Origin: Rebecca billardiae RCC1528
Taxonomy: Eukaryota; Protista; Haptophyta
Direction of reading: 5' to 3'
Assembly: GCA_965240325.2 (NCBI GenBank)
Contig: OZ251230.1
Span: forward strand, 806,001 to 870,000
Length of the DNA: 64,000 bases
Below, one piece after another: positions 11,982-56,623 of this stretch (within the stretch, counting starts at the first letter, position 1; each line of letters begins with the position of its first letter). A program made the position numbers and the translations under genes. Below the pieces are notes generated by a model. It was not told where the DNA came from and made no database searches. It saw only the letters and a program-made list of their open reading frames with translations.

Positions 11982-14900
11982 ATGGCTGATGGCGTGGACG
12001 CGTCCCCGCTCGCGGAGCTCGCCAAGCTGTGGGGGAAAGGCGACGTGGCGGCGCTGCTCGAGGCGAGCGAGGTCAACTTTAATGGCAACGCGGCTGTCTC
12101 CCAGGGCGTGCCGTGGCAGGGCGTGCTCGAGCTGCTCCTCAGGTCCACACGCCTTGAGAAACTCCGCCTCGGGTGTGCGCAGAGCAGTGGGGCGGGCAGG
12201 TGGCGGCGCCACGTGGCGCGTGCAGACGGAGGCGCATGGGCACACAATGTCGTGCATGTGGCTGGCCCATCGCCACGTGTCAGCGCCGCTCCGGGTGCCG
12301 CGACACCGCCGCCGCGTACGCCGCACGCGGTGCTCTCAGCAGCACGTGCGCGCGAGCACACAGGCGGTGCACGCGCGGAGATGCGTGCGCGGGGGGGGGC
12401 GTGAGCTTGCGGCGCGCGCGTGGATGCTGCATCGCGTGTGCCATCGCACACGCCGCTCAGCCGCGCCCCGCCCCGCGACCTCCCCTGCGCGCAGTCAGAC
12501 CGGCGTGGGTGACGAGGGTGCCACGCAGCTCGGCGCCGCCCTCGCGTCGGGCAAGACGCGCCTGCGGGAGCTGTACCTCCAGTGAGCGCTGGGGTGGGCA
12601 CTCGGCGCGGCACGCGGTGCGCGGACGGTGGGCGGCGGGGGAGGAGGGTGAGTGGCGTGCGTTGTCACGGGCATCGATGCGCACGAGCCCGGGCTGCCGC
12701 GCACGCCCCGCGCCGAGCGCCGTGCCCCCGCCGCCGCGCGCACAGCACGCGGCGGCGGCGGCGGCGCGCACACGCGAGCGCGCGCGCATCGGCGCACGCG
12801 CGCCGATGCGTGCGCGCGAGACGGGCGGGCGGGAGCTTGCGGCGCGCGCATGGATGCTACATCGCGTGCGCCATCGCACACGCCGCTCAGCCGCGCCCGC
12901 CCCGCGCCCTCCCCTGCGCGCAGGTGCACCGGCGTGGGTGACGAGGGTGCCACGCAGCTCGGCGCCGCCCTCGCGTCGGGCAAGACGCGCCTGCGGGTGC
13001 TGGACCTCTAGTGAGCGCTGGGGTGGGCACTCGGCGCGGCACGCGGTGCGTGGACGGGGGGCGGCGGGGAAGCAGGCTGGGTGGCGTGCATCGTCACGGG
13101 CATCGATGCGCACGAGCCCGGGCTACCACGCGCGCGCCGCGCCGAGCGCCGCGTCGCCGCCGCTGCTCGCGCCGCGTGCTGCGGCAGCTGCGCGCACACA
13201 CGAGCGCACGCATCGGCGCACGCGCGCCGATGCGTGCGCGCGTGACGGGGTCGCGGGCGCTCGAGGCGCGCGTATGCATGCTGCATCGCATGCGCCATCG
13301 CACACGCCGCTCAGCCGCGCCCCGCCCCGCGCCCTTCCCTGCGCGCAGTTACTGCCGCGGCGTGGGTGACGAGGGTGCCACGCAGCTCGGCGCCGCCCTC
13401 GCGTCGGGCAAGACGCGCCTGCGGTGGCTGAGCCTCTTGTGAGCGCTGGGGTGGGCACTCGGCGCGGCGCGCGGCGCGTGGACGGTGGGCGGCGGGGGAG
13501 GAGGCTGGGTGGCGCGCATTGTCACGGGCATCGCTGCGCACGAGCCCGGGCCGCCACACGCGCACCTCGCCGAGCGCTGCGCCGCAGCCACCGCGCGCGC
13601 CGCACGCTGCGGCAGCGGCGCGCACAAGCGAGCGCGCGCGCATCGGCACACGCGCGCCGATGCGTGTGCGCGTGACGGGCGGGCGGGAGCTTGCGGCGCG
13701 CGCATGGACGCTACATCGCGTGCGCCATCGCACACGCCGCTCAGCCGCGCCCCGCGCCGCGCCCTCCCCTGCGCGCAGTCACACCGGCGTGGGTGACGAG
13801 GGTGCCACGCAGCTCGGCGCCGCCCTCGCGTCGGGCAAGACGCGCCTGCGGGAGCTGAACCTCGGGTGAGCGCTGGGGTGGGCACTCGGCGCGGCGCGCG
13901 GCGCGTGGACGGTGGGCGGCGGGGGAGGAGTCTGGTTGGCGTGCGTTGTCACGGGCATCGATGCGCACGAGCCCGGGCTGCCGCGCGCGCCCCGCGCCGA
14001 GCGCCGTGCCCCCGCCGCCGAGCGCGCCGCACGCGGCGGCGGCGGCGGCGCGCACATGCGAGCGCGCGCACATCGGCACACGCGCGCCGATGCGTGTGCG
14101 CGTGACGGGCGGGCGGGAGCTTGCGGCGCGCGCATGGATGCTACATCGCGTGCGCCATCGCACATGCCGCTCAGTCTCGCCCCGCCCCGCGCCCTCCCCT
14201 GCGCGCAGGGACACCCGCGTGGGTGACGAGGGTGCCACGCAGCTCGGCGCCGCCCTCGCGTCGGGCAAGACGCGCCTGCGGGTGCTGAACCTCTTGTGAG
14301 CGCTGGGGTGGGCACTCGGCGCGGCGCGCGGCGCGCGGACGGTGGGCGGCGGGGGAGGAGGGTGGGTGGCGCGCATTGCCACGGGCATCGATGCGCACGA
14401 GCCCGGGCTATCACGCGCGCGCCACACCGAGCTCCGCGCCACCGCTGCCGTGCGGGCCGCACGCGGCGGCAGCTGCGCGCACACGCGAGCGCGCGCGCAT
14501 AGGCGCACGCGCGCCGATGCGTGCGCGCGTGACGGGGGCGCGGAAGCTTGCGGCGCGCGCGTGCATGCTGCATCGCGTGCGCCCTCGCACACGCCGCTCA
14601 GCCGCGCCCCGCCCCGCGCCCTCCCCTGCGCGCAGTTGCACCGGCGTGGGTGACGAGGGTGCCACACAGCTCGGCGCCGCCCTCGCGTGGGGCAAGACGC
14701 GCCTGCGGGAGCTGAACCTCGGGTGAGCGCTGGGGTGGGCACTCGGCGCGGCGCGCGGCGCGTGGACGGTGGGCGGCGGGGGAGGAGTCTGGTTGGCGTG
14801 CGTTGTCACGGGCATCGATGCGCACGAGCTCGGGCCGCCGCGCGCGCGCCGCGCCGAGCGCCGCGCCGCCGCCGCCGCGCGCGCCGCGCGCTGCGGCAGC

Positions 14901-17900
14901 GGCGGCGCGCACACGCGAGCGCGCGCGCATAGGCGCACGCGCGCCGATGCGTGCGCGCGTGTCGGGGGCGCGGGCGCTCGAGGCGCGCGCGTGCATGCTG
15001 CATCACGTGCGCCATTGCACACGCCGCTCAGCCGTGCCCCGCCCCGCGCCCTCCCCTGCGCGCAGTACCATGCACACGTCTAACAGGGTCCGGGCACGCG
15101 TCAATCAGGCCGTGAAGGCGAACAGTGCGCGGCTGCAGCAGGAGCCACCCAGGTGCAAGCGGCGGGGGGGGGCACAACGCGACGCGCCCGTGCACACGCG
15201 GGGCGGGCGGGAGAGGGAGCAGTGGGTTGCGATGATCGGCCGCCAGACGCGCGGCGCACCCCTGCTATGCCACCGCACGCCCCTGGCACGCGCTTCGCCA
15301 CCGCTCACGTGCGCGCCTCGCCCACCACCTGCCTGCGCGCGCAGTGATGACTCTGCTGATGACTCTGCTGATGACTCTGCTGACGACTCTGCTGACGATT
15401 CGGCCTCTGGCGACGAGGCAGAGGCAGCGGAGGAGGCGCAGGCCGCGCTCGACGCGCTCGCAGAGCGTCAGCGCGCGGCGGACGCCGCGCGCGCCGCGCT
15501 CGGCGCCGAGCAGGCGGCCATCCGCGCCGCCCTCGGCCGCGGCGGCGTGGACGAGGCGCGGCTGGCGCGGCGCGACGCGCGCCGTGCCGAGCTGGGCGCC
15601 GCGCTCGAGGCGCTCGGCGCGTGCGCGCTCGACGTGCACGCGGACTCGCAGCAGCGCGCGGCGGCGCTGCGTCGCGAGGCGCGCGCGTTGCGCGCGGCGC
15701 TCGAGCGCGCGGGCACGCCAGAGCAGCCGCGCGAGCCAGCCGGCGACGGGTCCGCTCCGGCGCCCCTGCCGCCGCCTCGCGCGCTCGAGCGCGCGGTGGG
15801 CGCGGCGGTGCGCGCGCACGACGCCGCAGCGCCGCCCTCCGGCGCGGGCGGTGGCGGCGCGGCGCTCGCTGCCGCGTGGGCGGAGGTCGCGCGCCAGGCC
15901 ATCGCCCTCGCGGCGCGCGGCACGTACGCCGACGCGGACGACGGCGCGTGCGCCTCGGCGTGGGCGCTCGCCATGCCCGGCCTGTGCGACGCGGCGCGCG
16001 CTGCCGCCACAAGCGGCGGTGGCCTGACCGACGCGGCGCGCGCGCGCGCGGCCGCGTGCGACGAGCTCGCCGCAGTGGCCGAGCGCGCGCGCACGATCGC
16101 GCGCGAGGCGGAGGCGGAGGCGCGCGAGCTCCGCGCGCTGCCGTCCGCCGAGCGCGCGCACGGCGCGCACGAGCTGCGCGAGCGCGAGGAGGCGTGCAGG
16201 GCGGCTGCGCGCGCGCTGCGCCTCGCGCGCCGCGCTCTAGAAGATGCTCAGGACGACGGCGGCGACGTGGACGGCGCACAGCGCGCGCTCGTCGACGCGC
16301 AGCGGCGCGCGCAGCGCACGCAGCGCGCGCGCGAGCGCTCGCTCGACCGCCTGTACGAGCTGGCGGGCGGGCCGTTCCCCGAGCTGCCCGCCATGCTGCC
16401 CGAGGCGTTCGACGGCGCGGGCGCGCTGCCCGCGGGCGCGCGGCCCGCGTGGCTGCACGGCCGCACGCTCGCGCAGTACGAGCCGTGCGAGTGGCCCGAC
16501 GGCGCGGCGCCCGGCCGCGCGCGGCACGAGGTGCTGCTGCGCACGTTCGCGGGCGAGCGCGTCGTGCTCAAGGTGTACCCGCTGGCGAGCGACACGGAGC
16601 GCCGGCTGCTCGGGCGCGAGGTGGAGTTTGCGCGGGCGCACGCGCACCCACACCTCGCGCGCGTGGCGGGCGTCTTTGTCGACCAGCCGCGCGGCGCGCG
16701 CTGCGCGCTCGTGCAGACGCCGCTCTACTCGGGCGGCACGCTGCGCGGCTGGCTCGAGCGCGACGAGGCGGCGGCGGGCTTGCCGCCCGAGGCGGTGCGC
16801 GGTGGCGCGGCGGGCGCGCGTATGCTCGAGCCGGCGCACGCGCGCGTCGCGCCCGTGCGCGTGCGCGCGCTGCGGCAGCTGCTGGGCGCGCTCGCGCACC
16901 TGCACGCGCGCGGCGCGGTGCACGGCGACGTGAAGCTCGAGAACGCGTTCGTGCAGCTGCCGGGCGACGACGCGGCGGAGCGGCCGCTCGGCGCGGCCGA
17001 GCCGTTCCGCGTGCTGCTCGGCGACTTTGACCTGGCGCGCGTGGAGGAGGCGCTGCAGCACGCGGCTGGCGGCGGCGTGCCGAGCGCGACGACGCGCGCG
17101 GGCGCGGGCACCGAGGGCCACATGGCGCCCGAGCTGCTCGTGCCCGGCGCGCGCGCGAGCGCGGCGTCGGACGTGTTCGCGTTCGGCGTGTGCGTGCTGC
17201 GCGCGCTCGCGGCCGACGAGCCGACGCGCGCCGCGCTCGTGGGCTCGGTGCAGGGCGCGCGCGCCGCGGCGGCTGCGCTGGGCGAGCCGCTCGTCGTGGC
17301 CGCGCTGTCGGACGCGCCGGGCGCGCGGCCGAGCGCGGCGCAGCTCGAGGGCGCGGCGCTGTGGGCGGCGAGCGACGAGGCGCTGCGCGCGGCCGAGGCC
17401 GAGCGCGAGGCGGCGGCCGCGAGCGCGCGCGCCGCGCTGCGCACGTGCGCGGTGTGCTTGGACGAGGAGGTGCCGCCGGACGAGTGCGCCGAGTGCGCGG
17501 GCGGCGGGCACGCGGTGTGCTCGCTCTGCCTCTCCATGCACGTGCAGGTGTGCGCGCAGCCCGACGGCGGCGGCGGCGCGGCGCTCGACGCGGACGGGCG
17601 CGTGCCGTGCGTCGAGGCGGGCAGCGGCTGCGCGCACGCGTACCTGGACGGCGAGCTCGCGCGCCGCACGACCGCCGCGGCGTTCGGCGCGTACTGGCGC
17701 GCGCGCGAGCAGCACGCCGAGGCGCGCGGCGAGGAGCGCGCGGCCGAGCGCGCGCGCGCCGAGGCCTTGCGCCTCGCTGCGCTCAGCGCGGCCGAGCGCG
17801 TGCGCGAGCAGCGGCGCGCACACATCATCGATCATATCCTCACGCTCAAGTGCCCGCGCTGCGGCATGGCGTTCGCCGAGTGGCTCGACGGCGCGCGCGG

Positions 17901-18210
17901 CTTCGACGGCTGCTGCGCGCTGCAGTGCGCGCGCGATCGGTGCGGCTGCCACTTCTGCGCCTACTGCCTCGCCGACTGCGGCGCCGACGCGCACCCGCAC
18001 GTGCGCGGCTGCGAGCACGGCAACGGCACGTACTTTGCGCAGCGCGGCGAGTTTGAGGCGGCGCAGCGCGCGCGGCGCGAGCGCGCGCTGCGCCGCTACC
18101 TCGCCGACGAGGCGGGCGCGGACGGCGCGGCGCGCCAAGCGATCGTCGCGTCCGTCGAGCGCGAGCTGCGCGACCTCCGCATCGACCCAGACGCACTCGC
18201 GCGCGAGTGA
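11982..18210 (+). CDS. LRR-kinase-RBR-like E3 protein, copy A (6 LRR exons, ~1222 aa). Exons 11982-12172, 12495-12581, 12924-13010, 13349-13438, 13779-13865, 14209-14295, 14636-14722, 15066-15152, 15345-18210
   Basis: All introns are GT..CAG and phase 2; the spliced frame is open from ATG to TGA. RI-type LRR unit xxGVGDEGATQLGAALASGKTRLRxLxL. Kinase motifs VVLK, REVE, HGDVKLEN, DFD, GTEGHMAPE, SDVFAFG. RING1 CAVC..C..H..CxxC..C..C and Rcat CPRC..FDGCCALQC..CGCHFCAYC. Confidence 0.9.
12495..15065 (+). repeat. Exon+intron tandem array A, six ~430-bp units
   Basis: Each unit is an 87/90-nt LRR exon plus a ~340-nt intron that starts GTGAGCGCTGGGGTGGGCACTC and ends in ...CCCTGCGCGCAG. Confidence 0.95.
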
Positions 18211-18489
18211 CCGGTGGGCCCCGGGGGCGTCGGCTGCGCGCAGTGTCAGGCGCGGGCGGGCACGTGGGCACGAGCTGAGCGCGATGATGCTCGGCGGGGG
18301 CCACGTGCGCGGATGCACCGCCACGCTGAACACGCTGGTGCCGAATCGCACGTGGCGGCTGGGGGCGCTCACCCAGCTCCGCGCCGTCGAGAGCTCCGAG
18401 CCGGAGCTACGCCGGCCGCTGAGGGGCGTCGGGGAGAGGGACGAGACGGAGGCGCGCGCCGCGACGATGCGCGGCTCGGTGGCTACGCG

Positions 18490-20115: not shown

Positions 20116-20315
20116 TACGCGGCCGTCCACCGCCGCGGGAGATTGGGCAGCCATCAAGACGACTCGCGCTCGTCACGAAAAGCTGAGACGAATAAATGAA
20201 AGGCGCCAAAGGCGCTTTCAGCTTCGCATCCGGACCAGAAAGCCACCGGAACTCCGGAAGGCATCGGCCATCGCCGCTCGCTCTCGGAGGCCGCCCAGGC
20301 GCCCAGTGCGACAGC

Positions 20316-23300
20316 ATGGCTGATGGCGTGGACGCGTCCCCGCTCGCGGAGCTCGCCAAGCTGTGGGGGAAAGGCGACGTGGCGGCGCTGCTCGAGGCGA
20401 GCGAGGTCAGCCCTCATGACAACGCGGTCTCCCAGGGCGTGCCGTGGCAGGGCGTGCTCGAGCTGCTCCTCACGTCCACACGCCTCGAGGAACTCCGCCT
20501 CAGGTGTGCGCAGAGCGGTGGGGCGGGCAGGTGGCGGCGGCACGTGGCGCGTGCAGACGGAGGCGCATGGGCACACACTGCCCTGCATGTGGCTGGCCCA
20601 TCGGCACGTGTCAGCGCCGCTCCGGGCGCCGCGCCGCCGCCGCCGCGTACGCCGCACGCGGTGCTCTCAGCAGCACGTGAGCGCGAGCACACAGGCGGTG
20701 CACGCGCACCGATGCGTGCGCGCGTGACGGGCGGACGGGAGCTTGAGGCGCGCGCATGCATGCTGCATCGCGTACGCCATCGCACACGCCGCTCAGCCGC
20801 GCCCCGCCGCGCGCCCTCCCCTGCGCGCAGTTTCACCGGCGTGGGTGACGAGGGTGCCACGCAGCTCGGCGCCGCCCTCGCGTCGGGCAAGACGCGCCTG
20901 CGGGTGCTGGACCTCGGGTGAGCGCTGGGGTGGGCACTCGGCGCGGCGCGCGGCGCGTGGACCGTGGGCGGCGGGGGAGGAGGGTGGGTGGCGTGCGTTG
21001 TCACGGGCATCGATGCGCACGAGCCCGGGCTGCTGCGCGCGCCCCGCGCCGAGCGCGGCGCCGCCACCACCGCGCACGCCGCACGCTGCGGCAGCGGCGG
21101 CGCGCACACGCGAGCGCGCGCGCATCGGCGCACGCGCGCCGATGCGTGCGCGCGTGACGGGGGCGCGGGAGCTTGCGGCGCGCGCATGCATGCTGCATCG
21201 CGTGCGCCATCGCACACGCTGCTCAGCTGCGCCCCGCCCCGCGCCCTCCCCTGCGCGCAGTTTCACCGGCGTGGGTGACGAGGGTGCCACGCAGCTCGGC
21301 GCCGCCCTCGCGTCGGGCAAGACGCGCCTGCGGGAGCTGAACCTCTAGTGAGCGCTGGGGTGGGCACTCGGCGCGGCGCGCGGCGCGTGGACGGTGGGTG
21401 GCGGGGGAGGAGGGTGGGTGGCTTGCGTTGTCGTGGGCATCGATGCGCGCGAGCCCGGGCTGCCGCGCGCGCGCCGCGCCGAGCGCCGCGCCGCCGCGGC
21501 CGCGCGCGCCGCACGCTGCGGCGGCGGCGCGCACACGCGAGCGCGCGCGCGTCGGCGCACGCGCGCCGATGCGTGCGCGCGTGACGGGGGCGCGGAAGCT
21601 TGCGGCGCGCGTATGCATGCTGCATCACGTGCGCCATCGCACACGCCGCTCAGCCGCGCCCCGCCCCGCGCCCTCCCCTGCGCGCAGTGGCTGTGACGGC
21701 GTGGGTGACGAGGGTGCCACGCAGCTCGGCGCCGCCCTCGCGTCGGGCAAGACGCGCCTGCGGAAGCTGAACCTCGAGTGAGCGCTGGGGTGGGCACTCG
21801 GCGCGGCGCGCGGCGCGTGGGCGGTGGCTGGCGGGGGAGGATGCTGAGTGGCGCGCATTGTCACGGGCATCATTGCGCACGAGCCCGCCCCGCGCGCGCC
21901 GCGCCGAGCGCGGCGCCGCCACCACCGCGCACGCCGCACGCTGCGGCAGTGGCGGCGCGCACACGCGAGCGCGCGCGCATCGGCACACGCGCGCCGATGC
22001 GTGTGCGCGTGACGGGCGGGCGGAAGCTTGCGGCGCGCGCATGCATGCTGCATCACGCGCGCCGTCGCACACGCCGCTCAACCGCGCCCCGCCCCGCGCC
22101 CTCCCCTGCGCGCAGTGGCTGTGACGGCGTGGGTGACGAGGGTGCCACGCAGCTCGGCGCCGCCCTCGCGTCGGGCAAGACGCGCCTGCGGAAGCTGAAC
22201 CTCGAGTGAGCGCTGGGGTGGGCACTCGGCGCGGCGCGCGGCGCGTGGACGGTGGGCGGCGGGGGAGGAGGGTGGGCGGCGCGCATCGTCACGGGCATCG
22301 ATGCGCGCGAGGCCGGGCCACCACGCGCGCGCCGCGCCGAGCGCCGCGCCGCCGCCGCCGCGCGCGCCGCGCGCTGCGGCAGCGGCGGCGCGCACACGCG
22401 AGCGCGCGCGCGCCGATGCGTGCGCGCGTGACGGAGGCGCGGGCGCTCGAGGCGCGCGCATGCATGCTGCATCACGTGCGCCATCGCATACGCCGCTCAG
22501 CCGCGCCCCGCCCCGCGCCCTCCCCTGCGCGCAGTGGCACCCGCGTGGGTGACGAGGGTGCCACGCAGCTCGGCGCCGCCCTCGCGTCGGGCAAGACGCG
22601 CCTGCGGGAGCTGAACCTCGAGTGAGCGCTGGGGTGGGCACTCGGCGCGGCGCGCGGCGCGTGGACGGTGGGCGGCGGGGGAGGAGGGTGGGTGGCGCGC
22701 ATCGTCACGGGCATCGATGTGCACGAGCCCGGGCTACCGCGCGCGCCCCGCGCCGAGCGCCGCCCCGCCGCCGCCGCGCGCGCCGCAGGCTGCGGCAGCG
22801 GCGGCGCGCACACGCGAGCGCGCGCGCATCGGCGCACGCGCGCCGATGCGTGCGCGCGTGACGGGGGCGCGGGAATGTGCGGCGCGCGCTTATGCATGCT
22901 GCATCGCGTGCGCCATCGCACACGCCGCTCAGTCGCGCCCCGCCCCGCGCCCTCCCCTGCGCGCAGTCGCACCGGCGTGGGTGACGAGGGTGCCACGCAG
23001 CTCGGCGCCGCCCTCGCGTCGGGCAAGACGCGCCTGCGGGAGCTGAACCTCCGGTGAGCGCTGGGGTGGGCACTCCGCGCGGCGCGCGGTGCGTGGACGG
23101 TGGGTGGCGGGGGAGGAGGGTGGGTGGCGCGCATTGTCACGGGCATCGATGCGCACGAGCCCGGGCTACCACGCGCGCGCCTCGCCGAGCGCCGCGCAGC
23201 CGCCGCGCCGCGCGCCGCACGCTGCGGCAGCGGCGGCGTGCACACGCGAGCGCGCGCGCATCGGCGCACGCGCGCCGATGCGTGCGCGCGTGACGGGGTC

Positions 23301-26300
23301 GCGGGCGCTCGAGGCGCGCGCATGCATGCTGCATCGCGTGCGCCATCGCACACGCTGCTCAGCTGCGCCCCGCCCCGCGCCCTCCCCTGCGCGCAGTTTC
23401 ACCGGCGTGGGTGACGAGGGTGCCACGCAGCTCGGCGCCGCCCTCGCGTCGGGCAAGACGCGCCTGCGGGAGCTGAACCTCTAGTGAGCGCTGGGGTGGG
23501 CACTCGGCGCGGCGCGCGGCGCGTGGACGGTGGGTGGCGGGGGAGGAGGGTGGGTGGCTTGCGTTGTCGTGGGCATCGATGCGCGCGAGCCCGGGCTGCC
23601 GCGCGCGCGCCGCGCCGAGCGCCGCGCCGCCGCGGCCGCGCGCGCCGCACGCTGCGGCGGCGGCGCGCACACGCGAGCGCGCGCGCATCGGCACACGCGC
23701 GCCGATGCGTGCGCGCGTGACGGGGGCGCGGGAGCTTGCGGCGCGCGCGTGCATGCTGCATCGCGTGCGCCATCGCACACGCCGCTCAGCCGCGCCCCGC
23801 CCCGCGCCCTCCCCTGCGTGCAGTGGCTGTGACGGCGTGGGTGGTGAGGTCCGGGCACGTGTGGATGAGGCCGTGGAGGCGAACAAGGCGCGGCTGCAGC
23901 AGGAGCCACCCAGGTGCAAGCGGTGGGGGGGCACAACGCGACGCGCCCGTGCACACGCGGGGCACGCGGGAAAGGGAGCAGCGGTCGGCGGTGATTGCCC
24001 GCCCGACGCGCGGCGCACCCCTGCTCTGCCACCGCACGCCCCTGGCACGCGCTTCGCCACCGCTCACGTGCGCGCCTCGCCCACCGCCTGCCTGCGCGTG
24101 CAGTGACGACTCTGCTGATGACTCTGCTGATGACTCTGCTGATGACTCGGCCTCTGGTGACGAGGCGGAGGCAGCGGAGGAGGCGGAAGCCGCGCTCGAC
24201 GCGCTCGCAGAGCGTCAACGCGCTGCGGACGCCGCGCGCGCCGCGCTCGGCGCCGAGCAGGCGGCCATCCGCGCCGCCCTCGGCCGCGGCGGCGTGGACG
24301 AGGCGCGGCTGGCGCGGCGCGACGCGCGCCGTGCCGAGCTGGGCGCCGCGCTCGAGGCGCTCGGCGCGTGCGCGCTCGACGCGCACGCGGACTCGCAGCA
24401 GCGCGCGGCGGCGCTGCGTCGCGAGGCGCGCGCGTTGCGCGCGGCGCTCGAGCGCGCGGGCACGCCAGAGCAGCCGCGCGCGCCAGCGGGCGACGGGTCC
24501 GCTCCGGCGCCCCTGCCGCCGTGTCGCGCGCTCGAGCGCGCGGTGGGCGCGGCGGTGCGCGCGCACGACGCCGCAGCGCCGCCCTCCGGCGCGGGCGCGG
24601 GCGGCGCGGCGCTCGCTGCCGCGTGGGCGGAGGTCGCGCGCCAGGCCATCGCCCTCGCGGCGCGCGGCACGTACGCCGACGCGGACGACGGCGCGTGCGC
24701 CTCGGCGTGGGCGCTCGCCATGCCCGGCCTGTGCGACGCGGCGCGCGCTGCCGCCACAAGCGGCGGTGGCCTGACCGACGCGGCGCGCGCGCGCGCGGCC
24801 GCGTGCGACGAGCACGCCGCAGTGGCCGAGCGCGCGCGCACGCTCGCGCGCGAGGCGGAGGCGGAGGCGCGCGAGCTCCGCGCGCTGCCGTCCGCCGAGC
24901 GCGCGCACGGCGCGCACGAGCTGCGCGAGCGCGAGGAGGCGTGCAGGGCGGCGGCGCGCGCGCTGCGTCTCGCGCGCCACGCTTTAGAAAACGCGCAGGA
25001 CGACGGCGGCGACGTGGACGGCGCACAGCGCGCGCTCGTCGACGCGCAGCGGCGCGCGCAGCGCACGCAGCGCGCGCGCGAGCGCTCGCTCGACCGTCTG
25101 TACGAGCTGGCGGGCGGGCCGTTCCCCGAGCTGCCCGCCATGCTGCCCGAGGCGTTCGACGGCGCGGGCGCGCTGCCCGCGGGCGCGCGGCCCGCGTGGC
25201 TGCACGGCCGCACGCTCGCGCAGTACGAGCCGTGCGAGTGGCCCGACGGCGCGGCGCCCGGCCGCGCGCGGCACGAGGTGCTGCTGCGCGCGTTCGCGGG
25301 CGAGCGCGTCGTGCTCAAGGTGTACCCGCTGGCGAGCGACACGGAGCGCCGGCTGCTCGGGCGCGAGGTGGAGTTTGCGCGGGCGCACGCGCACCCACAC
25401 CTCGCGCGCGTGGCGGGCGTCTTTGTCGACGAGCCGCGCGGCGCGCGCTGCGCGCTCGTGCAGACGCCGCTCTACTCGGGCGGCACGCTGCGCGGCTGGC
25501 TCGAGCGTGACGAGGCGACTGCCTTGCCGCCCGAGGCGGTGCGCGGCGGCGCGCCGGGCGCGCGAATGCTCGAGCCGGCGCACGCGCGCGTCGCGCCCGT
25601 GCGCGTGCGCGCGCTGCGGCAGCTGCTGGGCGCGCTCGCGCACCTGCACGCGCGCGGCGCGGTGCACGGCGACGTGAAGCTCGAGAACGCGTTCGTGCAG
25701 CTGCCGGGCGACGACGCGGCCGAGCGGCCGCTCGGCGCGGCCGAGCCGTTCCGCGTGCTGCTCGGCGACTTTGACCTGGCGCGCGTGGAGGAGGCGCTGC
25801 AGCACGCGGCTGGCGGCGGCGTGCCGAGCGCGACGACGCGCGCGGGCGCGGGCACCGAGGGCCACATGGCGCCCGAGCTGCTCGTGCCCGGCGCGCGCGC
25901 GAGCGCGGCGTCGGACGTGTTCGCGTTCGGCGTGTGCGTGCTGCGCGCGCTCGCGGCCGACGAGCCGACGCGCGCCGCGCTCGTGGGCTCGGTGCAGGGC
26001 GCGCGCGCCGCGGCGGCTGCGCTGGGCGAGCCGCTCGTCGTGGCCGCGCTGGCGGACGCGCCGGGCGCGCGGCCGAGCGCGGCGCAGCTCGAGGGCGCGG
26101 CGCTGTGGGCGGCAAGCGACGAGGCGCTGCGCGCGGCCGAGGCCGAGCGCGAGGCGGCGGCCGCGAGCGCGCGCGCCGCGCTGCGCACGTGCGCGGTGTG
26201 CTTGGACGAGGAGGTGCCGCCGGACGAGTGCGCCGAGTGCGCGGGCGGCGGGCACGCGGTGTGCTCGCTCTGCCTCTCCACGCACGTGCAGCTGTGCGCG

Positions 26301-26954
26301 CAGCCCGACGGCGGCGGCGGCGCGGCGCTCGACGCGGACGGGCGCGTGCCGTGCGTCGAGGCGGGCAGCGGCTGCGCACACGCGTACCTGGACGGCGAGC
26401 TCGCGCGCCGCACGACCGCCGCCGCGTTCGGCGCGTACTGGCGCGCGCGCGAGCAGCACGCCGAGGCGCGCGGCGAGGAGCGCGCGGCCGAGCGCGCGCG
26501 CGCCGAGGCCGAGCGCCTCGCGGCGCTCAGCGCGGCCGAGCGCGTGCGCGAGCAGCGGCGCGCGCACATCATCGATCATATCCTCACGCTCAAGTGCCCG
26601 CGCTGCGGCATGGCGTTTGCCGAGTGGCTCGACGGCGCGCGCGGCTTCGACGGCTGCTGCGCGCTGCAGTGCGCGCGCGATCGGTGCGGCTGCCACTTCT
26701 GCGCCTACTGCCTCGCCGACTGCGGCGCCGACGCGCACCCGCACGTGCGCGGCTGCGAGCACGGCAACGGCACGTACTTTGCGCAGCGCGGCGAGTTTGA
26801 GGCGGCGCAGCGCGCGCGGCGCGAGCGCGCGCTGCGCCGCTACCTCGCCGACGAGGCGGGCGCGGACGGCGCGGCGCGCCAAGCGATCGTCGCGTCCGTC
26901 GAGCGCGAGCTGCGCGACCTCCGCATCGACCCAGACGCACTCGCGCGCGAGTGA
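20316..26954 (+). CDS. LRR-kinase-RBR-like E3 protein, copy B (7 LRR exons, ~1247 aa). Exons 20316-20503, 20831-20917, 21261-21347, 21688-21777, 22116-22205, 22535-22621, 22967-23053, 23397-23483, 23824-23913, 24104-26954
   Basis: Same architecture and motifs as copy A. All introns are phase 2 and the spliced frame is open. Confidence 0.9.
20831..23823 (+). repeat. Exon+intron tandem array B, seven ~430-bp units
   Basis: Same unit as array A. Confidence 0.95.
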
Positions 26955-27239
26955 CCGGTGGGCCCCGGGGGCGTCGGCTGCGCGCAGTGTCAGGCGCTGG
27001 CGGGCACGTGGGCACGAGCTGAGCGCGATGATGCTCTGCAGGGGCCACGTGTGCGCATGCACCGCCACGCTGAACACGCTGGTGGCGAATCGCGCGTGGC
27101 GGCTGGGGGCGCTGACCCAGCTCCGCGCCGTCGGGAGCTCCGAGCCGGAGCTACGCCGGCCGCTGAGGGGCCTCGGGGAGAGGGATGAGACGGGGGCGCG
27201 CGCTGCACTGGCGCGTCGGCTGGCAGCAGCTCAGCCGCG

Positions 27240-28003
27240 CGCTCCAGTGAACGGCGCACGGACGGTGAACGAGTTGGCGACCTTCTCCTTCGTGCTGACG
27301 AAATCGCTCAGTCAGCTTGCCGAGGAGGATCCCCGCCCACTTGTGCGCGTACCCGCTCGACGCGTCCACGGCGACGGCGGCGTCGGCGAGCTCGATCCCC
27401 GATCGGATCAGCTCCTCGCGCCGCGCCGCGTCATCAGCCGCCTGCTCGGACAGCTCGTAGCGCGCGCGCGCACGCCGCCAGAGGAGCTCGACGTCGTCAG
27501 CCGCGGGTGCAGCGGAGGCCTCCTGCTCGAGCAGTGCGTACAGAGCTTCGTATTCGCCCGTGGCGCGCATCTCGTCCGCGCGCGAGAAGCGCGCTGGGCT
27601 CTCTTCGAGCGGCGGTGCCATCTTGATCTGCCCACTCGGCCTCTCGAGGCTGGTCGCACCGTCCCGCCCCCGGTGGCACGGGTGAGGCCGAGCCGTCCAG
27701 TGCAGCCCGCGCTGCAGCCTCGCCCGGTGCGGTAGCATCGGGTTTGCGGCGGCGATAGAGCCGCAGCGGCGAAAGGCGCGAGAGAAGCCGACGTACGCGG
27801 CCAGGCCGCGCTGAAGCTTCCTCCTCCCGTTCCTCCTCGCAGGACGAATCAACCATCATGGCAACACACGTGCGTGCAGGCGAAGGCGGCAGGAGCTTGC
27901 ATCCGGGCGCGAGGGTCGGAGATGAGCCTGGCCAGTGCGCGCGAGGAATGTGGGCACCACCAAAGGGCACGGCGGCGAGCACTAGCACGACGGCCAACCG
28001 CAT
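27240..28003 (-). pseudogene. RMDN/RMD-1 5' fragment, second copy, frameshifted and truncated
   Basis: MAPPLEESPARFSRADEMRATGEYEALYALLEQ...DDVELLWRRARARYELS...YAHKWAGILLGKL. A 4-bp TCAG duplication at ~27308-27315 shifts the frame. Confidence 0.7.
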
Positions 28004-28180
28004 TACGCGGCCGTCCACCGCCGCGGGAGATTGGGCAGCCGTCAAGACCGAAGACGACTCGCGCTCGTCACGAAAAGCTGAGACGAAATGAAAGGCGCTT
28101 CGCATCCGGACCAGCAACCACCGGAACTCCGGAAGGCATGACGGCCATCGCCGCTCTCGGAGGCCGCCCAGCGCGAGAGC

Positions 28181-31100
28181 ATGGCTGATGGCGTGGACGC
28201 GTCCCCGCTCGCGGAGCTCGCGGAGCTGTGGGGGCAAGGCGACGTGGCGGCGCTGCTCGAGGCGAGCGAGGTTCGCCTTCATGACGACGCGGTCTCCCAG
28301 GGCGTGCCGTGGCAGGGCGTGCTCGAGCTGCTCCTCACGTCCACACGCCTCGAGAAACTCAACCTCGGGTGTGCGCAGAGCAGTGGGGCGGGCAGGTGGC
28401 GGCGCCACGTGGCGCGTGCAGACAGATGCGCATGGGCACACACTGCCCTGCATGTGGCTGGCCCCGCGGCGCGTGTCAGCGCCGCTCCGGGTGCCGCGCC
28501 ACCGCCGCCGCGTACGCCACACGCGGTGCTCACGGCGGCACGTGAGCGCGAGCACACAGGCGGTGCACGCGCGGAGATGCGTGCGCGCGTGACGGGCGGG
28601 CGGGAGCTTGAGGCGCGCGCATGCATGCTGCATCGCGTGCACAATCGCACACGCCGCTCAGCCGCGCCCCGCCCCGCGCCCTCCCCTGCGCGCAGTTTCA
28701 CCGGCGTGGGTGACGAGGGTGCCACGCAGCTCGGCGCTGCCCTCGCGTCGGGCAAGACGCGCCTGCGGGGGCTGGACCTCACGTGAGCGCTGGGGTGGGC
28801 ACTCGGCGCGGCGTGCGGCGCGTGGACGGTGGGCGGCGGGGGAGGAGGGTGGGTGGCGTGCGTTGTCACGGGCATCGATGCGCGCGAGCCCGGGCTGCCG
28901 CGCGCGCCCCGCGCCGAGCGCCGTGCCCCCGCCGCCGCGCGCGCCGCACGCGGCGGCGGCGGCGGCGCGCACACGCGAGCGCGCGCGCATCGGCGCACGC
29001 GCGCCGATGCGTGCGCGCGTGACGGGGGCGCGGAAGCTTGCGGCGCGCGCGTGCATGCTGCATTGCGTGCGCCATCGCACACGCCGCTCAGCTGCGCCCC
29101 GCCCCGTGCCCTCCCCTGCGTGCAGTGCCTGCCACGGCGTGGGTGACGAGGGTGCCACGCAGCTCGGCGCCGCCCTCGCGTCGGGCAAGACGCGCCTGCG
29201 GGTGCTGAACCTCTGGTGAGCGCTGGGGTGGGCACTCGGCGCGGCGCGCGGCGCGTGGACGGTGGGTGGCGGGGGAGTAGGGTGGGTGCCGCGCATTGTC
29301 ACGGGCATCGATGCGCGCGAGCCCGGGCCACCACGCGCGCGCCGCGCCGAGCGCCGCGCCGCCGCCGCGCCGCGCGCTGCACGCTGCGGCAGCGGCGGCG
29401 CGCACACGCGAGCGCGCGCGCATCGGCACACGCGCGCCGATGCGTGCGCGCGTGACGGGGGCGCGGAAGCTTGCGGCGCGCGCGTGCATGCTGCATCGCG
29501 TGCGCCATCGCACACGCCGCTCAGCTGCGCCCCGCCCCGTGCCCTCCCCTGCGTGCAGTGCCTGCCACGGCGTGGGTGACGAGGGTGCCACGCAGCTCGG
29601 CGCCGCCCTCGCGTCGGGCAAGACGCGCCTGCGGGAGCTGCACCTCTAGTGAGCGCTGGGGTGGGCACTCGGCGCGGCGCGCGGCGCGTGGACGGTGGGC
29701 GGCGGGGGAGGAGGCTGGGTGGCGCGCATTGTCACGGGCATCGATGCGCACGAGCCCGGGCTATCGCGCGCGCCCCGCGCCGAGCGCCGTGCCCCCGCCG
29801 CCGCGCGCGCCGCACGCGGCGGCGGCGGCGGCGCGCACACGCGAGCGCGCGCGCATCGGCACACGCGCGCCGATGCGTGCGCGCGTGACGGGGGCGCGGG
29901 AGCTTGCGGCGCGCGCATGCATGCTGCATCGCGTGCGCCATCGCACACGCCGCTCAGCCGCGCCCCGCCCCGCGCCCTCCCCTGCGCGCAGTCAGACCGG
30001 CGTGGGTGACGAGGGTGCCACGCAGCTCGGCGCCGCCCTCGCGTCGGGCAAGACGCGCCTGCGGGAGCTGCACCTCGGGTGAGCGCTGGGGTGGGCACTC
30101 GGCGCGGCGCGCGGCGCGTGGGCGGTGGGCGGCGGGGGAGGAGGGTGGGTGGCGTGCGTTGTCACGGGCATCGATGCGCGCGAGCCCGGGCTGCCGCGCG
30201 CGCCCCGCGCCGAGCGCCGTGCCCCCGCCGCCGCGCGCGCCGCACGCGGCGGCGGCGGCGGCGCGCACACGCGAGCGCGCGCGCATCGGCGCACGCGCGC
30301 CGATGCGTGCGCGCGTGACGGGGGCGCGGAAGCTTGCGGCGCGCGCGTGCATGCTGCATCGCGTGCGCCATCGCACACGCCGCTCAGCCGCGCCCCGCCC
30401 CGCGCCCTCCCCTGCGCGCAGTCAGACCGGCGTGGGTGACGAGGGTGCCACGCAGCTCGGCGCCGCCCTCGCGTCGGGCAAGACGCGCCTGCGGGAGCTG
30501 CACCTCGGGTGAGCGCTGGGGTGGGCACTCGGCGCGGCGCGCGGCGCGTGGGCGGTGGGCGGCGGGGGAGGAGGTTGGGTGACGCGCATTGTCACGGGCA
30601 TCGATGCGCGCGAGCCCGGGCTGCCGCGCGCGCGCCGCGCCGAGCGCCGCGCCGCCGCCGCCGCGCGCGCCGCACGCTGCGGCAGCGGCGGCGCGCACAC
30701 GCGAGCGCGCGCGCATCGGCACACGCGCGCCGATGCGTGCGCGCGTGACGTGGGCGCGGGCGCTCTAGGCTAGGCGCGCGCATGCATGATGCATCGCGTG
30801 CGCCGTCGCACATGCTGCTCAGCCGCGCCCCGCCCCGCGCCCTCCCCTGCGCGCAGTAACACCCGCGTGGGTGACGAGGGTGCCACGCAGCTCGGCGCCG
30901 CCCTCGCGTCGGGCAAGACGCGCCTGCGGGGGCTGAACCTCCGGTGAGCGCTGGGGTGGGCACTCGGCGCGGCGCGCGGCGCGTGGACGGTGGGCGGCGG
31001 GGGAGGAGGCGGGGTGGCGCGCATCGTCACGGGCATCGATGCGCACGAGCTCGGGCCGCCGCGCGCGCGCTGCGCCGAGCGCCGCGCCGCAGCCGCCGCG

Positions 31101-34100
31101 CGCGCTGCACGCTGCGGCGGCGGTGGCGCGCACACGCGAGCGCGCGCGCATTGGCGCACGCGCGCCGATGCGTGCGCGCGTGACGGGGGCGCGGGAGCTT
31201 GCGGCGCGCGCATGCATGCTGCATGGCGTGCGCCATCGCACACGCCGCTCAGCCGCGCCCCGCCCCGCGCCCTCCCCTGCACGCAGCAACGCCAGCGTGG
31301 GTGACAAGGGTGCCACGCAGCTCGGCGCCGCCCTCGCGTCGGGCAAGACGCGCCTGCGGGTGCTGTCCCTCGAGTGAGCGCTGGGGTGGGCACTCGGCGC
31401 GGCGCGCGGCGCGTGGACGGTGGGCGGCCGGGGATGAGGCTGCGTGCTGCACAGCGTCACGGGCATCGATGCGCGCGAGGCCGGGCTACCGCGCGCGCCC
31501 CGCGCCGAGCGCCGCGCCCCCGCCGCCGCGCGCGCCGCCTGCGGCGGCGGCGGCGGCGCGCACACGCGAGCGCGCGCGCATCGGCACACGCGCGCCGATG
31601 CGTGTGCGCGTGACGGGCGGGCGGGAGCTTGCGGCGCGCGCATGGATGCTACATCGCGTGCGCCATGGCACACGCCGCTCAGCCGCGCCCCGCCCCGCGC
31701 CCTCCCCTGCGCGCAGTTACTGCCGCGGCGTGGGTGACGAGGGTGCCACGCAGCTCGGCGCCGCCCTCGCGTCGGGCAAGACGCGCCTGCGGGTGCTGGA
31801 CCTCTGGTGAGCGCTGGGGTGGGCACTCGGCGCGGCGCGCGGTGCGTGGACGGTGGGCGGCGGGGGAGGAGGGTGGGTGCTGCGCATCGTTACGGGCATC
31901 GATGCGCACGAGTCAGGGCTGCCGCGTGCGCCCCGCGCCGAGCGCCGCGCCGCCACCACCGCGCGCGCCGCACGCTGCGGCAGCGGCGGCGCGCACACGC
32001 GAGCGCGCGCGCATCGGCACACGCGCGCCGATGCGTGCGCGCGTGACGGGGGCGCGGGAGCATGCGGCGTGCCCATGCATGCTGTATCACGCGCGCCATC
32101 GCGCACGCCGCTTAGCCGCGCCCCGCCCCCGCGCCCTCCCTTGCGCGCAGGGGATGCCGCGGCGTGGGTGACGAGTGTGCCACGCAGCTCGGCGCCGCCC
32201 TCGCGTCGGGCAAGACGCGCCTGCGGGAGCTGATCCTCGAGTGAGCGCTGGGGTGGGCCCTCGGCGCGGCGCGTGGTGCGTGGATGTTGGACGGCGGGGG
32301 AGGAGGGTGGGTGACGCGCATCGTCACGGGCATCGATGCGCTCGAGCGCGGGCCGCCGCGCGCGCGCCACACCGAGCGGCGTGCCGCCGCTGCCGAGCGC
32401 GCCACACGCTGTGGCAGCGGCGCGCACACGCGAGCGCACGCATCGGCGCACGCGCGCCGATGCGTGCGCGCGTGACGGGGGCGCGGGAGCTTGCGGCGCG
32501 CGCGTGCATGCTGCATCGCGTGCGCCATCGCACACGCCGCTCAGCCGCGTCTGGCCCCGCGCCCTCCCGTGCGCGCAGTGGCACCGGCGTGGGTGACGAG
32601 GGTGCCACGCAGCTCGGCGCCGCCCTCGCGTCGGGCAAGACGCGCCTGCGGGAGCTGAACCTCCGGTGAGCGCTGGGGTGGGCCCTCGGCGCGGCGCGCG
32701 GCGCGTGGACGGTGGGCGGCGGGGGAGGAGGCTGGGTGGCTCTCATGGTCACGGGCATCGATGCGCACGAGCCCGGGCTACCACGCGCGCGCCTCGCCGA
32801 GCGCCGTGCCCCCGCCGCCGCGTGCGCCGCACGCGGCGGCGGCGGCGGCGCGCACACGCGAGCGCGCGCGCATCGGCGCACGCGCCGATGCGTGCGCATG
32901 TGACAGGGTTGCGGGCACATGCACGCGCGCATGCATGCTGTATCGCGTGCGCCATCGCACACGCCGTTCAGCCGCGCCCCGCCCCTCGCCCTCCCCCGCA
33001 CGCAGTCTCACCGACACGTCTGGCGAGGTCCGGGCACGCGTCAATCAGGCCGTGAAGGCGAACAGGGCGCGGCTGGAGCAGGAGCCACCCAGGTGCAAGC
33101 GGCGGGGGGGCACAACGCGACGCGCCCGTGCACGCGCGGGGCGGGCGGGAAAGGGGGCAGCGGTCGGCACTGATTGCCCGCCCGATGAGCGGCGCACCCC
33201 GGCTCTGCCACCGCACACCTGTGGCACGCACTTTGCCGCCGCTCACGTGCGCGCCTCGCCCACCGCCTGCCTGCGCGTGCAGTGACGACTCTGCTGATGA
33301 CTCTGCTGATGACTCTGCTGACGACTCTGCTGACGACTCGGCCTCTGGCGACGAGGCGGGGGCGGAGGAGGCGGAGGGGGTGGAGGAGGCGGAGACCGCG
33401 CTCGACGCGCTCGCGGAGCGGCGGCGCGCTGCGGACGCCGCGCGCGCCGCGCTCGGCGCCGAGCAGGCGGCCATCCGCGCCGCCCTCGGCCGCGGCGGCG
33501 TGGACGAGGCGCGGCTGGCGCGGCGCGACGCGCGCCGTGCCGAGCTGGGCGCCGCGCTCGAGGCGCTCGGCGCGTGCGCGCTCGACGCGCACGCGGACTC
33601 GCAGCAGCGCGCGGCGGCGCTGCGTCGCGAGGCGCGCGCGTTGCGCGCGGCGCTCGAGCGCGCGGGCACGCCAGAGCAGCCGCGCGCGCCAGCCGGCGAC
33701 GGGTCCGCTCCGGCGCCCCTGCCGCCGTCTCGCGCGCTCGAGCGCGCGGTGGGCGCGGCGGTGCGCGCGCACGACGCCGCAGCGCCGCCCTCCGGCGCGG
33801 GCGGTGGCGGCGCGGCGCTCGCTGCCGCGTGGGTGGAGGTCGCGCGCCAGGCCATCGCCCTCGCGGCGCGCGGCACGTACGCCGACGCGGACGACGGCGC
33901 GTGCGCCTCGGCGTGGGCGCTCGCCATGCCCGGCCTGTGCGACGCGGCGCGCGCTGCCGCCACAAGCGGCGGTGGCCTGACCGACGCAGCGCGCGCGCGC
34001 GCGGCCGCGTGCGACGAGCTCGCCGCAGTGGCCGAGCGCGCGCGCACGATCGCGCGCGAGGCGGAGGCGGAGGCGCGCGAGCTCCGCGCGCTGCCGTCCG

Positions 34101-36198
34101 CCGAGCGCGCGCACGGCGCGCACGAGCTGCGCGAGCGCGAGGAGGCGTGCAGGGCGGCGGCGCGCGCGCTGCGTCTCGCGCGCCACGCTTTAGAAAACGC
34201 GCAGGACGACGGCGGCGACGTGGACGGCGCACAGCGCGCGCTCGTCGACGCGCAGCGGCGCGCGCAGCGCACGCAGCGCGCGCGCGAGCGCTCGCTCGAC
34301 CGCCTGTACGAGCTGGCGGGCGGGCCGTTCCCCGAGCTGCCCGCCATGCTGCCCGAGGCGTTCGACGGCGCGGGCGCGCTGCCCGCGGGCGCGCGGCCCG
34401 CGTGGCTGCACGGCCGCACGCTCGCGCAGTACGAGCCGTGCGAGTGGCCCGACGGCGCGGCGCCCGGCCGCGCGCGGCACGAGGTGCTGCTGCGCGCGTT
34501 CGCGGGCGAGCGCGTCGTGCTCAAGGTGTACCCGCTGGCGAGCGACACGGAGCGCCGGCGGCTCGGGCGCGAGGTGGAGTTTGCGCGGGCGCACGCGCAC
34601 CCACACCTCGCGCGCGTGGCGGGCGTCTTTGTCGACGAGCCGCGCGGCGCGCGCTGCGCGCTCGTGCAGACGCCGCTCTACTCGGGCGGCACGCTGCGCG
34701 GCTGGCTCGAGCGCGACGAGGCGACTGCCTTGCCGCCCGAGGCGGTGCGCGGCGGCGCGGCGGGCGCGCGAATGCTCGAGCCGGCGCACGCGCGCGTCGC
34801 GCCCGTGCGCGTGCGCGCGCTGCGGCAGCTGCTGGGCGCGCTCGCGCACCTGCACGCGCGCGGCGCGGTGCACGGCGACGTGAAGCTCGAGAACGCGTTC
34901 GTGCAGCTGCCGGGCGACGACGCGGCCGAGCGGCCGCTCGGCGCGGCCGAGCCGTTCCGCGTGCTGCTCGGCGACTTTGACCTGGCGCGCGTGGAGGAGG
35001 CGCTGCAGCACGCGGCTGGCGGCGGCGTGCCGAGCGCGACGACGCGCGCGGGCGCGGGCACCGAGGGCCACATGGCGCCCGAGCTGCTCGTGCCCGGCGC
35101 GCGCGCGAGCGCGGCGTCGGACGTGTTCGCGTTCGGCGTGTGCGTGCTGCGCGCGCTCGCGGCCGACGAGCCGACGCGCGCCGCGCTCGTGGGCTCGGTG
35201 CAGGGCGCGCGCGCCGCGGCGGCTGCGCTGGGCGAGCCGCTCGTCGTGGCCGCGCTGGCGGACGCGCCGGGCGCGCGGCCGAGCGCGGCGCAGCTCGAGG
35301 GCGCGGCGCTGTGGGCGGCGAGCGACGAGGCGCTGCGCGCGGCCGAGGCCGAGCGCGAGGCGGCGGCCGCGAGCGCGCGCGCCGCGCTGCGCACGTGCGC
35401 GGTGTGCTTCGACGAGGAGGTGCCGCCGGACGAGTGCGCCGAGTGCGCGGGCGGCGGGCACGCGGTGTGCTCGCTCTGCCTCTCCATGCACGTGCAGGTG
35501 TGCGCGCAGCCCGACGGCGGCGGCGGCGCGGCGCTCGACGCGGACGGGCGCGTGCCGTGCGTCGAGGCGGGCAGCGGCTGCGCGCACGCGTACCTGGACG
35601 GCGAGCTCGCGCGCCGCACGACCGCCGCCGCGTTCGGCGCGTACTGGCGCGCGCGCGAGCAGCACGCCGAGGCGCGCGGCGAGGAGCGCGCGGCCGAGCG
35701 CGCGCGCGCCGAGGCCTTGCGCCTCGCGGCGCTCAGCGCGGCCGAGCGCGTGCGCGAGCAGCGGCGCGCGCACATCATCGATCATATCCTCACGCTCAAG
35801 TGCCCGCGCTGCGGCATGGCGTTCGCCGAGTGGCTCGACGGCGCGCGCGGCTTCGACGGCTGCTGCGCGCTGCAGTGCGCGCGCGATCGGTGCGGCTGCC
35901 ACTTCTGCGCCTACTGCCTCGCCGACTGCGGCGCCGACGCGCACCCGCACGTGCGCGGCTGCGAGCACGCGCCGACGCGCACCCGCACGTGCGCGGCTGC
36001 GAGCACGGCAACGGCACGTACTTTGCGCAGCGCGGCGAGTTTGAGGCGGCGCAGCGCGCGCGGCGCGAGCGCGCGCTGCGCAGCTACCTCGCCGCCGAGG
36101 CGGGCGCGGACGACGCGGCGCGCCGAGCGATCGTCGCGTCCGTCGAGCGCGAGCTGCGCGACCTCCGCATCGACCCAGACGCACTCGCGCGCGAGTGA
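28181..36198 (+). CDS. LRR-kinase-RBR-like E3 protein, copy C (10 LRR exons). Exons 28181-28368, 28696-28782, 29126-29215, 29559-29648, 29992-30078, 30422-30508, 30857-30943, 31287-31373, 31717-31806, 32151-32240, 32579-32665, 33006-33092, 33283-36198; a frameshift after Rcat extends the ORF to 36739
   Basis: Same architecture as copies A and B. A 38-bp tandem duplication (35931-35968 / 35969-36006) shifts the frame before the homologous stop at 36196-36198. Confidence 0.85.
28696..33005 (+). repeat. Exon+intron tandem array C, ten ~430-bp units
   Basis: Same unit as arrays A and B. Confidence 0.95.

Positions 36199-56583: not shown

Positions 56584-56623
<40 letters not shown>

Follow-up and report, generated by a model that had tools for sequence, protein, structure and literature searches.

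The window analyzed in this work is a stretch of 64,000 nucleotides (nt) from the haptophyte Rebecca billardiae RCC1528 (contig OZ251230.1, positions 806,001 to 870,000), and it contains a tandem family of three genes in which arrays of one-repeat leucine-rich repeat (LRR) exons are joined to a large exon for a predicted protein kinase and a ubiquitin ligase-like module. Our analyses have identified six codons of the repeated LRR exons that are highly variable within an otherwise homogenised array, and signs that the repeated units have been duplicated and exchanged. We consider it rather probable that these genes encode a fast-evolving family of cytosolic LRR-kinase-ligase recognition proteins, in which the concave LRR face would bind a fast-changing ligand, binding would activate the kinase and lead to ubiquitin tagging, and the diversity would be carried in the germline.

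Organization of the Genes and Their LRR Arrays

All three genes consist of a first exon of 188 or 191 nt that carries the ATG, an LRR array, a cap exon of 87 or 90 nt and a last exon of approximately 2.9 kb, in a region whose G+C content is 75–80%. Their features are the following:

11982–18210, + strand, gene 1 (9 exons, 1222 amino acids (aa)), with exon 1 at 11982–12172
12495–14722, + strand, LRR cassette array of gene 1 (6 exons, each 87 or 90 nt, phase 2-2)
12495–12581, 12924–13010, 13349–13438, 13779–13865, 14209–14295 and 14636–14722, + strand, LRR exons of gene 1
15066–15152, + strand, cap/linker exon of gene 1, degenerate and LRR-derived (87 nt, phase 2-2)
15345–18210, + strand, last exon of gene 1, predicted from translation, Pfam and structure models to encode a DDSA acidic repeat, an Ala/Arg/Glu-rich helical region, kinase, RING1, hairpin, Rcat-like finger and helical tail
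20316–26954, + strand, gene 2 (10 exons, 1247 aa), with exon 1 at 20316–20503, cap exon at 23824–23913 and last exon at 24104–26954
20831–20917, 21261–21347, 21688–21777, 22116–22205, 22535–22621, 22967–23053 and 23397–23483, + strand, LRR exons of gene 2
28181–36739, + strand, gene 3 (13 exons, 1537 aa as it stands), with exon 1 at 28181–28368, cap exon at 33006–33092 and last exon at 33283–36739
28696–28782, 29126–29215, 29559–29648, 29992–30078, 30422–30508, 30857–30943, 31287–31373, 31717–31806, 32151–32240 and 32579–32665, + strand, LRR exons of gene 3
35931–36007, + strand, exact 38-bp tandem duplication in gene 3 (Tandem Repeats Finder: period 38, 2.0 copies, 100% matches)

A 20-nt core motif has 23 occurrences in the window, all of them on the + strand and none on the − strand, and these fall into groups of 6, 7 and 10, which confirms the number of LRR exons given in an earlier, sequence-only reading of this DNA. 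Every one of these exons is bounded by AG upstream and GTGAGC downstream (four acceptor sites were corrected by eye), 16 of the 23 are 87 nt and 7 are 90 nt in length, and every intron is of phase 2, just as that reading had described. Because all of the LRR exons are symmetric (phase 2-2) and have lengths that are multiples of 3, the gain, loss or skipping of any cassette keeps the reading frame, and the frame-keeping design that had been proposed is thereby upheld. The exon+intron unit is about 430 bp long, and for gene 1 Tandem Repeats Finder reports a period of 430 bp (6.3 copies, 89% matches). The repeat introns (322–348 nt) have a mean pairwise identity of 87%, in agreement with their earlier description as near-identical repeats. 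The cap exon is a degenerate cassette, and that of gene 2 still resembles the start of a cassette.

A conserved, GC-rich palindrome (two 16-nt arms around a loop of 4 nt) lies in the middle of 21 of the 26 repeat introns that were scanned (e.g. 13207–13242). No compensatory changes were seen in this palindrome, and a structured RNA in the repeat intron was rejected, as folding of the whole intron was no better than that of shuffled sequences (z = −1.18). The palindrome might favour recombination or pausing.

The cassettes encode repeats of 29 or 30 residues (repeat table) that agree with the consensus of the ribonuclease-inhibitor (RI) type of LRR, viz. LxxLxLxx(N/C/T)x(L/V)G..GA..L in 28–30 residues. 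The single 28-aa LRR exons gave no Pfam matches because they are too short, and a spliced protein from the window matches the LRR_6 region of a relative from another protist (P0132, described below) with a BLASTP E-value of 1.5e-11. Each protein carries a solenoid of 7–11 RI-type LRRs, one per exon. The last exon begins with a 12-nt repeat encoding DDSA (15345–15395, 24104–24148 and 33283–33339, with 4.2, 3.8 and 4.8 copies, respectively), and the paralogues therefore differ in the length of this acidic linker. The DDSA repeat is followed by approximately 330 Ala/Arg/Glu-rich, Pfam-negative residues that precede the kinase. Among the other exons tested, Pfam gave nothing significant, the one match to STN (E 0.1) being below the cut-off. 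The highest 19-residue Kyte-Doolittle mean is 1.53, located within the kinase, and the N-terminus is acidic, so that no transmembrane helix or signal peptide is visible, as the sequence-only reading had also noted; the proteins are probably soluble and cytosolic, to judge from these features.

The three spliced models (1222, 1247 and 1537 aa) are open throughout with no internal stops. No further copies of the constant last exon are present elsewhere in the window, and the three last exons are 98% identical at the protein level. The earlier description of a nearly identical kinase + RING/Rcat exon holds to this extent and fails at the end of gene 3, where the 38-bp duplication causes a frameshift immediately downstream of the Rcat finger, so that the open reading frame (ORF) extends to 36739. 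The helical tail that is conserved in the family sits in another frame of gene 3, at 35974–36195. Two origins are considered for this duplication, viz. a disabling mutation of very recent date and an error of assembly or polishing.

Diversity and Evolution of the LRR Cassettes

All 23 units were aligned and diversity (pi) was computed for each column. The diversity is 0.006 in the 69 core exon positions, 0.087 in the 20 internal introns and 0.36–0.41 in six variable codons, which correspond to repeat positions 27, 29, 1, 2, 4 and 5, viz. the x residues of the LxxLxLxx strand and the next turn. It is established that the x residues of this motif line the concave binding face of LRRs, and this has been stated for Ectocarpus (PMC3341825). 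The non-synonymous diversity (pN) of the six codons is 0.43, against a synonymous diversity (pS) of 0.08 that rests on few synonymous sites, and the pN of the core is 0.005. The ratio of transitions to transversions is 11:21 in the variable codons versus 102:71 in the introns, which fits selection for any amino acid change and argues against a deaminase-like mutational bias; deaminase-type mutation at these codons was rejected, as they show no excess of transitions. The overall pattern is that of diversifying selection on six ligand-face codons that are carried by a homogenised scaffold. Synonymous sites of the exon cores (12495–32665) are about 10 times less diverse than the adjoining introns (pS 0.008 versus pi 0.087); codon bias alone may not account for this low value, and conversion tracts centred on the exons are possible.

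Duplication and exchange of 430-bp units, each an exon with its intron, drive the evolution of the LRR arrays and keep their scaffold nearly uniform. Twenty of the 23 LRR exons are distinct, identical exons being found as neighbours (g2c3/c4 and g3c4/c5) and as non-neighbours (g2c2/c7), and 4 types of 5′ end recur with more than one type of 3′ end. Positional orthology between the paralogues is absent for the internal units, at least 13 recombination events (Rm) are required, and a PHI-like permutation test gave greater compatibility between adjacent sites than after shuffling (p = 0.02). The earlier suggestion of a recombinable ligand-binding domain gains support both from the hypervariable ligand-face codons and from these signs of unit duplication and recombination. 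The mean amino acid identity of the cassettes is 85.2% (88.7% in gene 2 and 83.3% in gene 3) over 174–290 aa. The kinase-ligase exon is under purifying selection, with pN/pS values of 0.24–0.35 and pS values of 0.024–0.038, and the non-repeat introns differ by 6–13%.

These results bear upon two alternative explanations. Arrays of 430-bp repeats are hard to assemble, and the exact duplication in gene 3 may itself reflect faulty assembly or polishing, or else a mutation that disables the gene, so that the arrays could be artefacts of assembly or the genes decaying pseudogenes. However, the introns of the units differ from each other by 2–29%, and most of the exons are distinct; the same design is present in three independent copies whose reading frames and splice sites are intact; and the purifying selection on the last exon argues against decay. 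We therefore regard this explanation as extremely unlikely. The second alternative is that cassettes are skipped, swapped or rearranged within an individual, in the manner of Dscam or the VLRs, giving many receptors from one genome. Such diversification, at the somatic or transcript level, is favoured by the symmetric phase 2-2 cassettes, any of which could be skipped in frame, and alternative splicing has been reported for the LRR exons of brown-algal ROCO genes (PMC11378527). On the other hand, the window contains no orphan or inverted cassettes, every cassette is inside an intact gene with canonical splice sites, and the variable sites show no transition bias of the deaminase type; somatic diversification of this kind is very unlikely in our estimation.

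Kinase and Ligase Modules of the Constant Exon

The last exon carries three conserved domains, whose locations in gene 1 are as follows:

16552–17229, + strand, protein kinase domain (Pfam Pkinase, PF00069; E 5.3e-14, 52.7 bits versus a cut-off of 31.7)
17446–17655, + strand, RING1 of the C3HC4 type (invariant C6, C9, C22, H27, C30, C33 and C60 in alignment A1; Foldseek matches to RBR RING1 domains)
17851–18015, + strand, Rcat-like zinc finger (candidate catalytic Cys codon at 17911–17913)

The kinase has all of the catalytic residues. Its motifs are in place, viz. VVLKVY (with the beta3 Lys), the HGDVKLEN loop, DFD and APE, and the H, D, K and N of the catalytic loop and the Asp of DFD are invariant across 18 relatives. 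A PINK1-like kinase was considered and found to be unsupported, as the best matches among solved structures are a MAP kinase kinase-like protein, followed by IRE1, WNK and RIPK.

An alignment of the C-terminal 260 residues and eight homologues (alignment A1) was used as a profile, which matches the Rcat of parkin (E 4.7e-4) and RING2 of ARIH1 (E 8e-4). The invariant GC of the family aligns to the GC of the GGC(M/N)HM motif in the Rcat domains of parkin and ARIH1, which we take to contain the catalytic Cys of both proteins, and this candidate catalytic Cys is invariant in 43 relatives. An AlphaFold (AF2) model of the ligase module has a pLDDT (predicted local distance difference test) of 90; in a Foldseek comparison of this model with the PDB, nearly all of the top 50 matches are RBR ligases (RNF216, HHARI, parkin, ARIH2, HOIL-1 and HOIP), and the matches of RING1 include 1wim (TM-score 0.68) and RING1 of HOIP (7v8g). 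Two long helices, forming a hairpin at residues 82–137 of the model, appear to replace the IBR domain. Profiles and the model together point to a RING1–helical hairpin–Rcat-like module that is related to the RBR ubiquitin ligases.

Relatives with the Same Architecture

A word-indexed search returned nine matches, the best of which is a 48% identical MMETSP transcript without LRRs. An exhaustive search identified 3324 representatives at E ≤ 0.001, and most of the best 150 of these match the ligase module alone. Among 43 long relatives, a kinase is found in 35, a UPF1-like helicase in 5, ubiquitin in 4, and ankyrin repeats, LRR_6 and the Pfam domain IBR_1 in 2 each. Transcripts in which LRR_6, kinase and ligase are combined are present in Euglena gracilis (P0083) and in the protist MMETSP0960 (P0132/P0162, marked as complete, 1240 aa; Pfam LRR_6 E 1.4e-33 in P0132), and ankyrin or ubiquitin-ankyrin heads precede the kinase-ligase module in Pigoraptor and Paulinella. 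Matches among the AlphaFold DB clusters are to uncharacterised protist entries only, and matches in Swiss-Prot are through the kinase alone, the first being the Dictyostelium kinase/NEDD4-like HECT protein Q8SSY6. No relatives of the ligase module were found among viruses in IMG/VR, searches of metagenome contigs with an exact exon core of 41 nt and with a degenerate pattern of 14 codons gave no other strains or species with this cassette and no orphan cassettes, and our literature search found no description of an LRR-kinase-RBR-like family.

A genomic contig that carries the P0132 gene (L001, 46% G+C; locus at 1912–6799) contains nine 84-nt LRR exons of phase 2-2, separated by introns of 83–102 nt that begin with GTAAGT and followed by a single large exon, and the translation of the joined exons reads the P0132 transcript protein. 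As the genomic exons match the transcript, splicing in this relative connects the one-repeat exons with each other and with the kinase-ligase exon, and the one-LRR-per-exon design is thus a trait of the family and not an invention of the Rebecca locus. The sequence-only reading had viewed the architecture as an independent and unique solution, and this is not borne out by the transcripts from Euglena gracilis and the MMETSP protist, or by the phase-2 exons of L001. The LRR exons of L001 are only 50% identical at the nucleotide level and its introns are unrelated, which is the state of old, diverged repeats.

The relatives also lend weight to a different interpretation, in which the proteins are ordinary regulatory ligases whose LRRs act as substrate adaptors for endogenous targets, as in F-box/LRR proteins, and the variable codons stem from sub-functionalisation of recent paralogues, or else from recognition in mating or between self and nonself, instead of from defence against pathogens. 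The kinase-RING1/Rcat module is joined in them to many non-immune heads (ankyrin, ubiquitin, UPF1-like helicase, SAM and PARP), the LRRs of L001 are old and show no sign of rapid turnover, and the flanks of the Rebecca genes are devoid of defence genes. Against this, variation at five times the intron level that is limited to ligand-face codons on a homogenised scaffold is the pattern of a conflict-driven receptor, and the number of cassettes differs among paralogues that are otherwise 98% identical. A regulatory or self-recognition role is a serious rival, although we judge it to be unlikely.

Proposed Function and Its Significance

In the recognition function that we favour, the concave face of the LRRs would bind a protein ligand that changes fast, the most plausible sources being a virus, a parasite or some other genetic conflict. 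Binding may switch on the kinase, either by release of autoinhibition or by clustering through the helical region; an E2 would then dock on RING1, and ubiquitin would pass to the Rcat Cys and from there onto a downstream target or the ligand itself. Variation among the cassettes would be germline and evolutionary, not somatic. The immune character of this proposal is suggested by analogy with brown-algal ROCOs and fungal NLRs.

A number of observations weigh against this interpretation. The gene models and their splicing are predicted from the genomic sequence, the tail of gene 3 is frameshifted, and the pS of the variable codons depends on the small number of sites noted above. The ligand of the LRR face and its link to pathogens are suggested by analogy, and the flanks hold no immune genes, containing instead GT47, GH5, RCC1 and a reverse-transcriptase fragment. 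In the kinase, the GxGxxG glycine-rich loop is missing upstream of the beta3 Lys, where the family consensus is degenerate. In the ligase module, the region between RING1 and the CPRC motif has no Cys/His cluster, i.e. no IBR/BRcat, and the residue two positions after the Rcat Cys is an invariant Ala (A163 in alignment A1, A699 in A2), whereas parkin and HHARI use a His at this position. Because both the IBR and the catalytic His are missing, thioester catalysis is not assured, and we refer to the module as RBR-like (RING1-Rcat) and not as a member of the RBR family; the RBR label of the sequence-only reading is to this extent not supported.

To our knowledge, most unicellular algae and protists are without classical NLR repertoires, and little is known of how they recognize viruses and parasites. 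It is possible, although doubtful, that these genes belong to a class of intracellular immune receptors in protists that has not been described, in which a re-targetable LRR head is placed on a kinase and an IBR-less RBR-type ligase in one chain, the work of an NLR is done without a NOD, and the kinase-RING1/Rcat unit serves as a portable effector cassette for many sensor heads across eukaryotes. If this were true, recognition would lead straight to phosphorylation and ubiquitin tagging of the invader. The kinase-RING1/Rcat module is common in sequence data from protists and no member of it is known to have been studied; the biochemistry of a single one would therefore serve to annotate thousands of proteins. 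The introns of the arrays provide a built-in neutral yardstick for selection on the repeats, and the locus is in this respect a clean natural experiment.

Other Features of the Window

Three other features were identified in the window, outside the gene family:

42–1319, ORF with a reverse-transcriptase domain (RVT_1, E 8.8e-17), representing part of a retroelement at the start of the window
2525–3299, 186/369-bp tandem repeat; long ORFs overlap it on both strands and have no Pfam matches
51021–57491, − strand, ORF of 2156 aa containing RCC1-like repeats (WD40_RLD, E 3e-84); the local G+C content is 86%

Comparison with Known Systems

The locus unites two known hallmarks of conflict receptors, viz. 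one-repeat exon cassettes and near-identical repeats with hypervariable residues on the binding face. The new element is the pairing of effectors, as a kinase combined with a RING1/Rcat ligase without an IBR is not known to have been described before.

A combination of kinase and E3 ubiquitin ligase in a single chain is found in Arabidopsis KEG (RING-kinase-ankyrin) and in the U-box kinases. These proteins and Dictyostelium Q8SSY6 share with the present family the presence of both activities in one polypeptide, sometimes together with a repeat domain; their ligase, however, is of the RING-HC, U-box or HECT type, their domains are in another order, and they have no hypervariable LRR array. The RBR ligases (parkin, HHARI/ARIH1, RNF216, HOIP and HOIL-1) share, by profile and predicted fold, the succession of a RING1 and an Rcat-type finger whose catalytic position is occupied by a conserved Cys, whereas the Rebecca proteins have a Cys-free helical hairpin instead of the IBR/BRcat, an Ala in place of the catalytic His, and a fusion to a kinase.

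The brown-algal ROCO (LRR-ROC-COR) candidate receptors likewise have one LRR per frame-preserving exon and occur in tandem clusters, and their concave-face residues show positive selection (Zambounis et al., 2012, PMC3341825; Teng et al., 2024, PMC11378527). They have 72-nt exons for plant-type LRRs, a ROC-COR GTPase effector and orphan or inverted LRRs within introns. The present genes differ in having 87/90-nt RI-type exons, a kinase + RING1/Rcat effector, introns that are homogenised together with the exons, and no orphan cassettes in the window; a ROC-COR GTPase core was not found by Pfam, and the last exon gave the kinase only.

Near-identical repeats, concerted evolution, hypervariability of sites on the binding face and differences in repeat number are features that the present genes have in common with fungal NLRs of the NWD family (HET-E/HET-D; Dyrka et al., 2014, PMC4986451). 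High internal conservation is defined for them by repeats that are >85% identical across at least 100 aa (PMC4986451), and the cassette identity reported above is right at this threshold and reaches it. The fungal proteins, however, carry WD, ANK or TPR repeats, usually inside a single exon, on a NACHT/NB-ARC core, whereas the genes described here have LRRs, one exon for each, and no NOD; Pfam found neither NACHT nor NB-ARC in the window proteins. The RI-type LRR sensors (ribonuclease inhibitor and animal NLRC/NLRP) share repeats of 28–30 residues with a GDEGA-type motif, and the difference from NLRC/NLRP lies in the lack of a NACHT domain and in an effector that is enzymatic. Assembly of the VLR kind uses an incomplete germline gene and donor cassettes without splice sites; here, all 23 cassettes are inside complete genes with AG/GT borders, and none is on the − strand.

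The closest counterparts are the transcripts P0132/P0162 and P0083, which have the same order of LRR_6, helical region, kinase, RING1, hairpin and Rcat and are of similar length, although their constant part is only 25–30% identical. L001 has 84-nt exons and unrelated introns, and the codon that its introns split comes two codons earlier in the repeat. In comparison with L001, what is special to the Rebecca locus is the homogenised, hypervariable state of its arrays.

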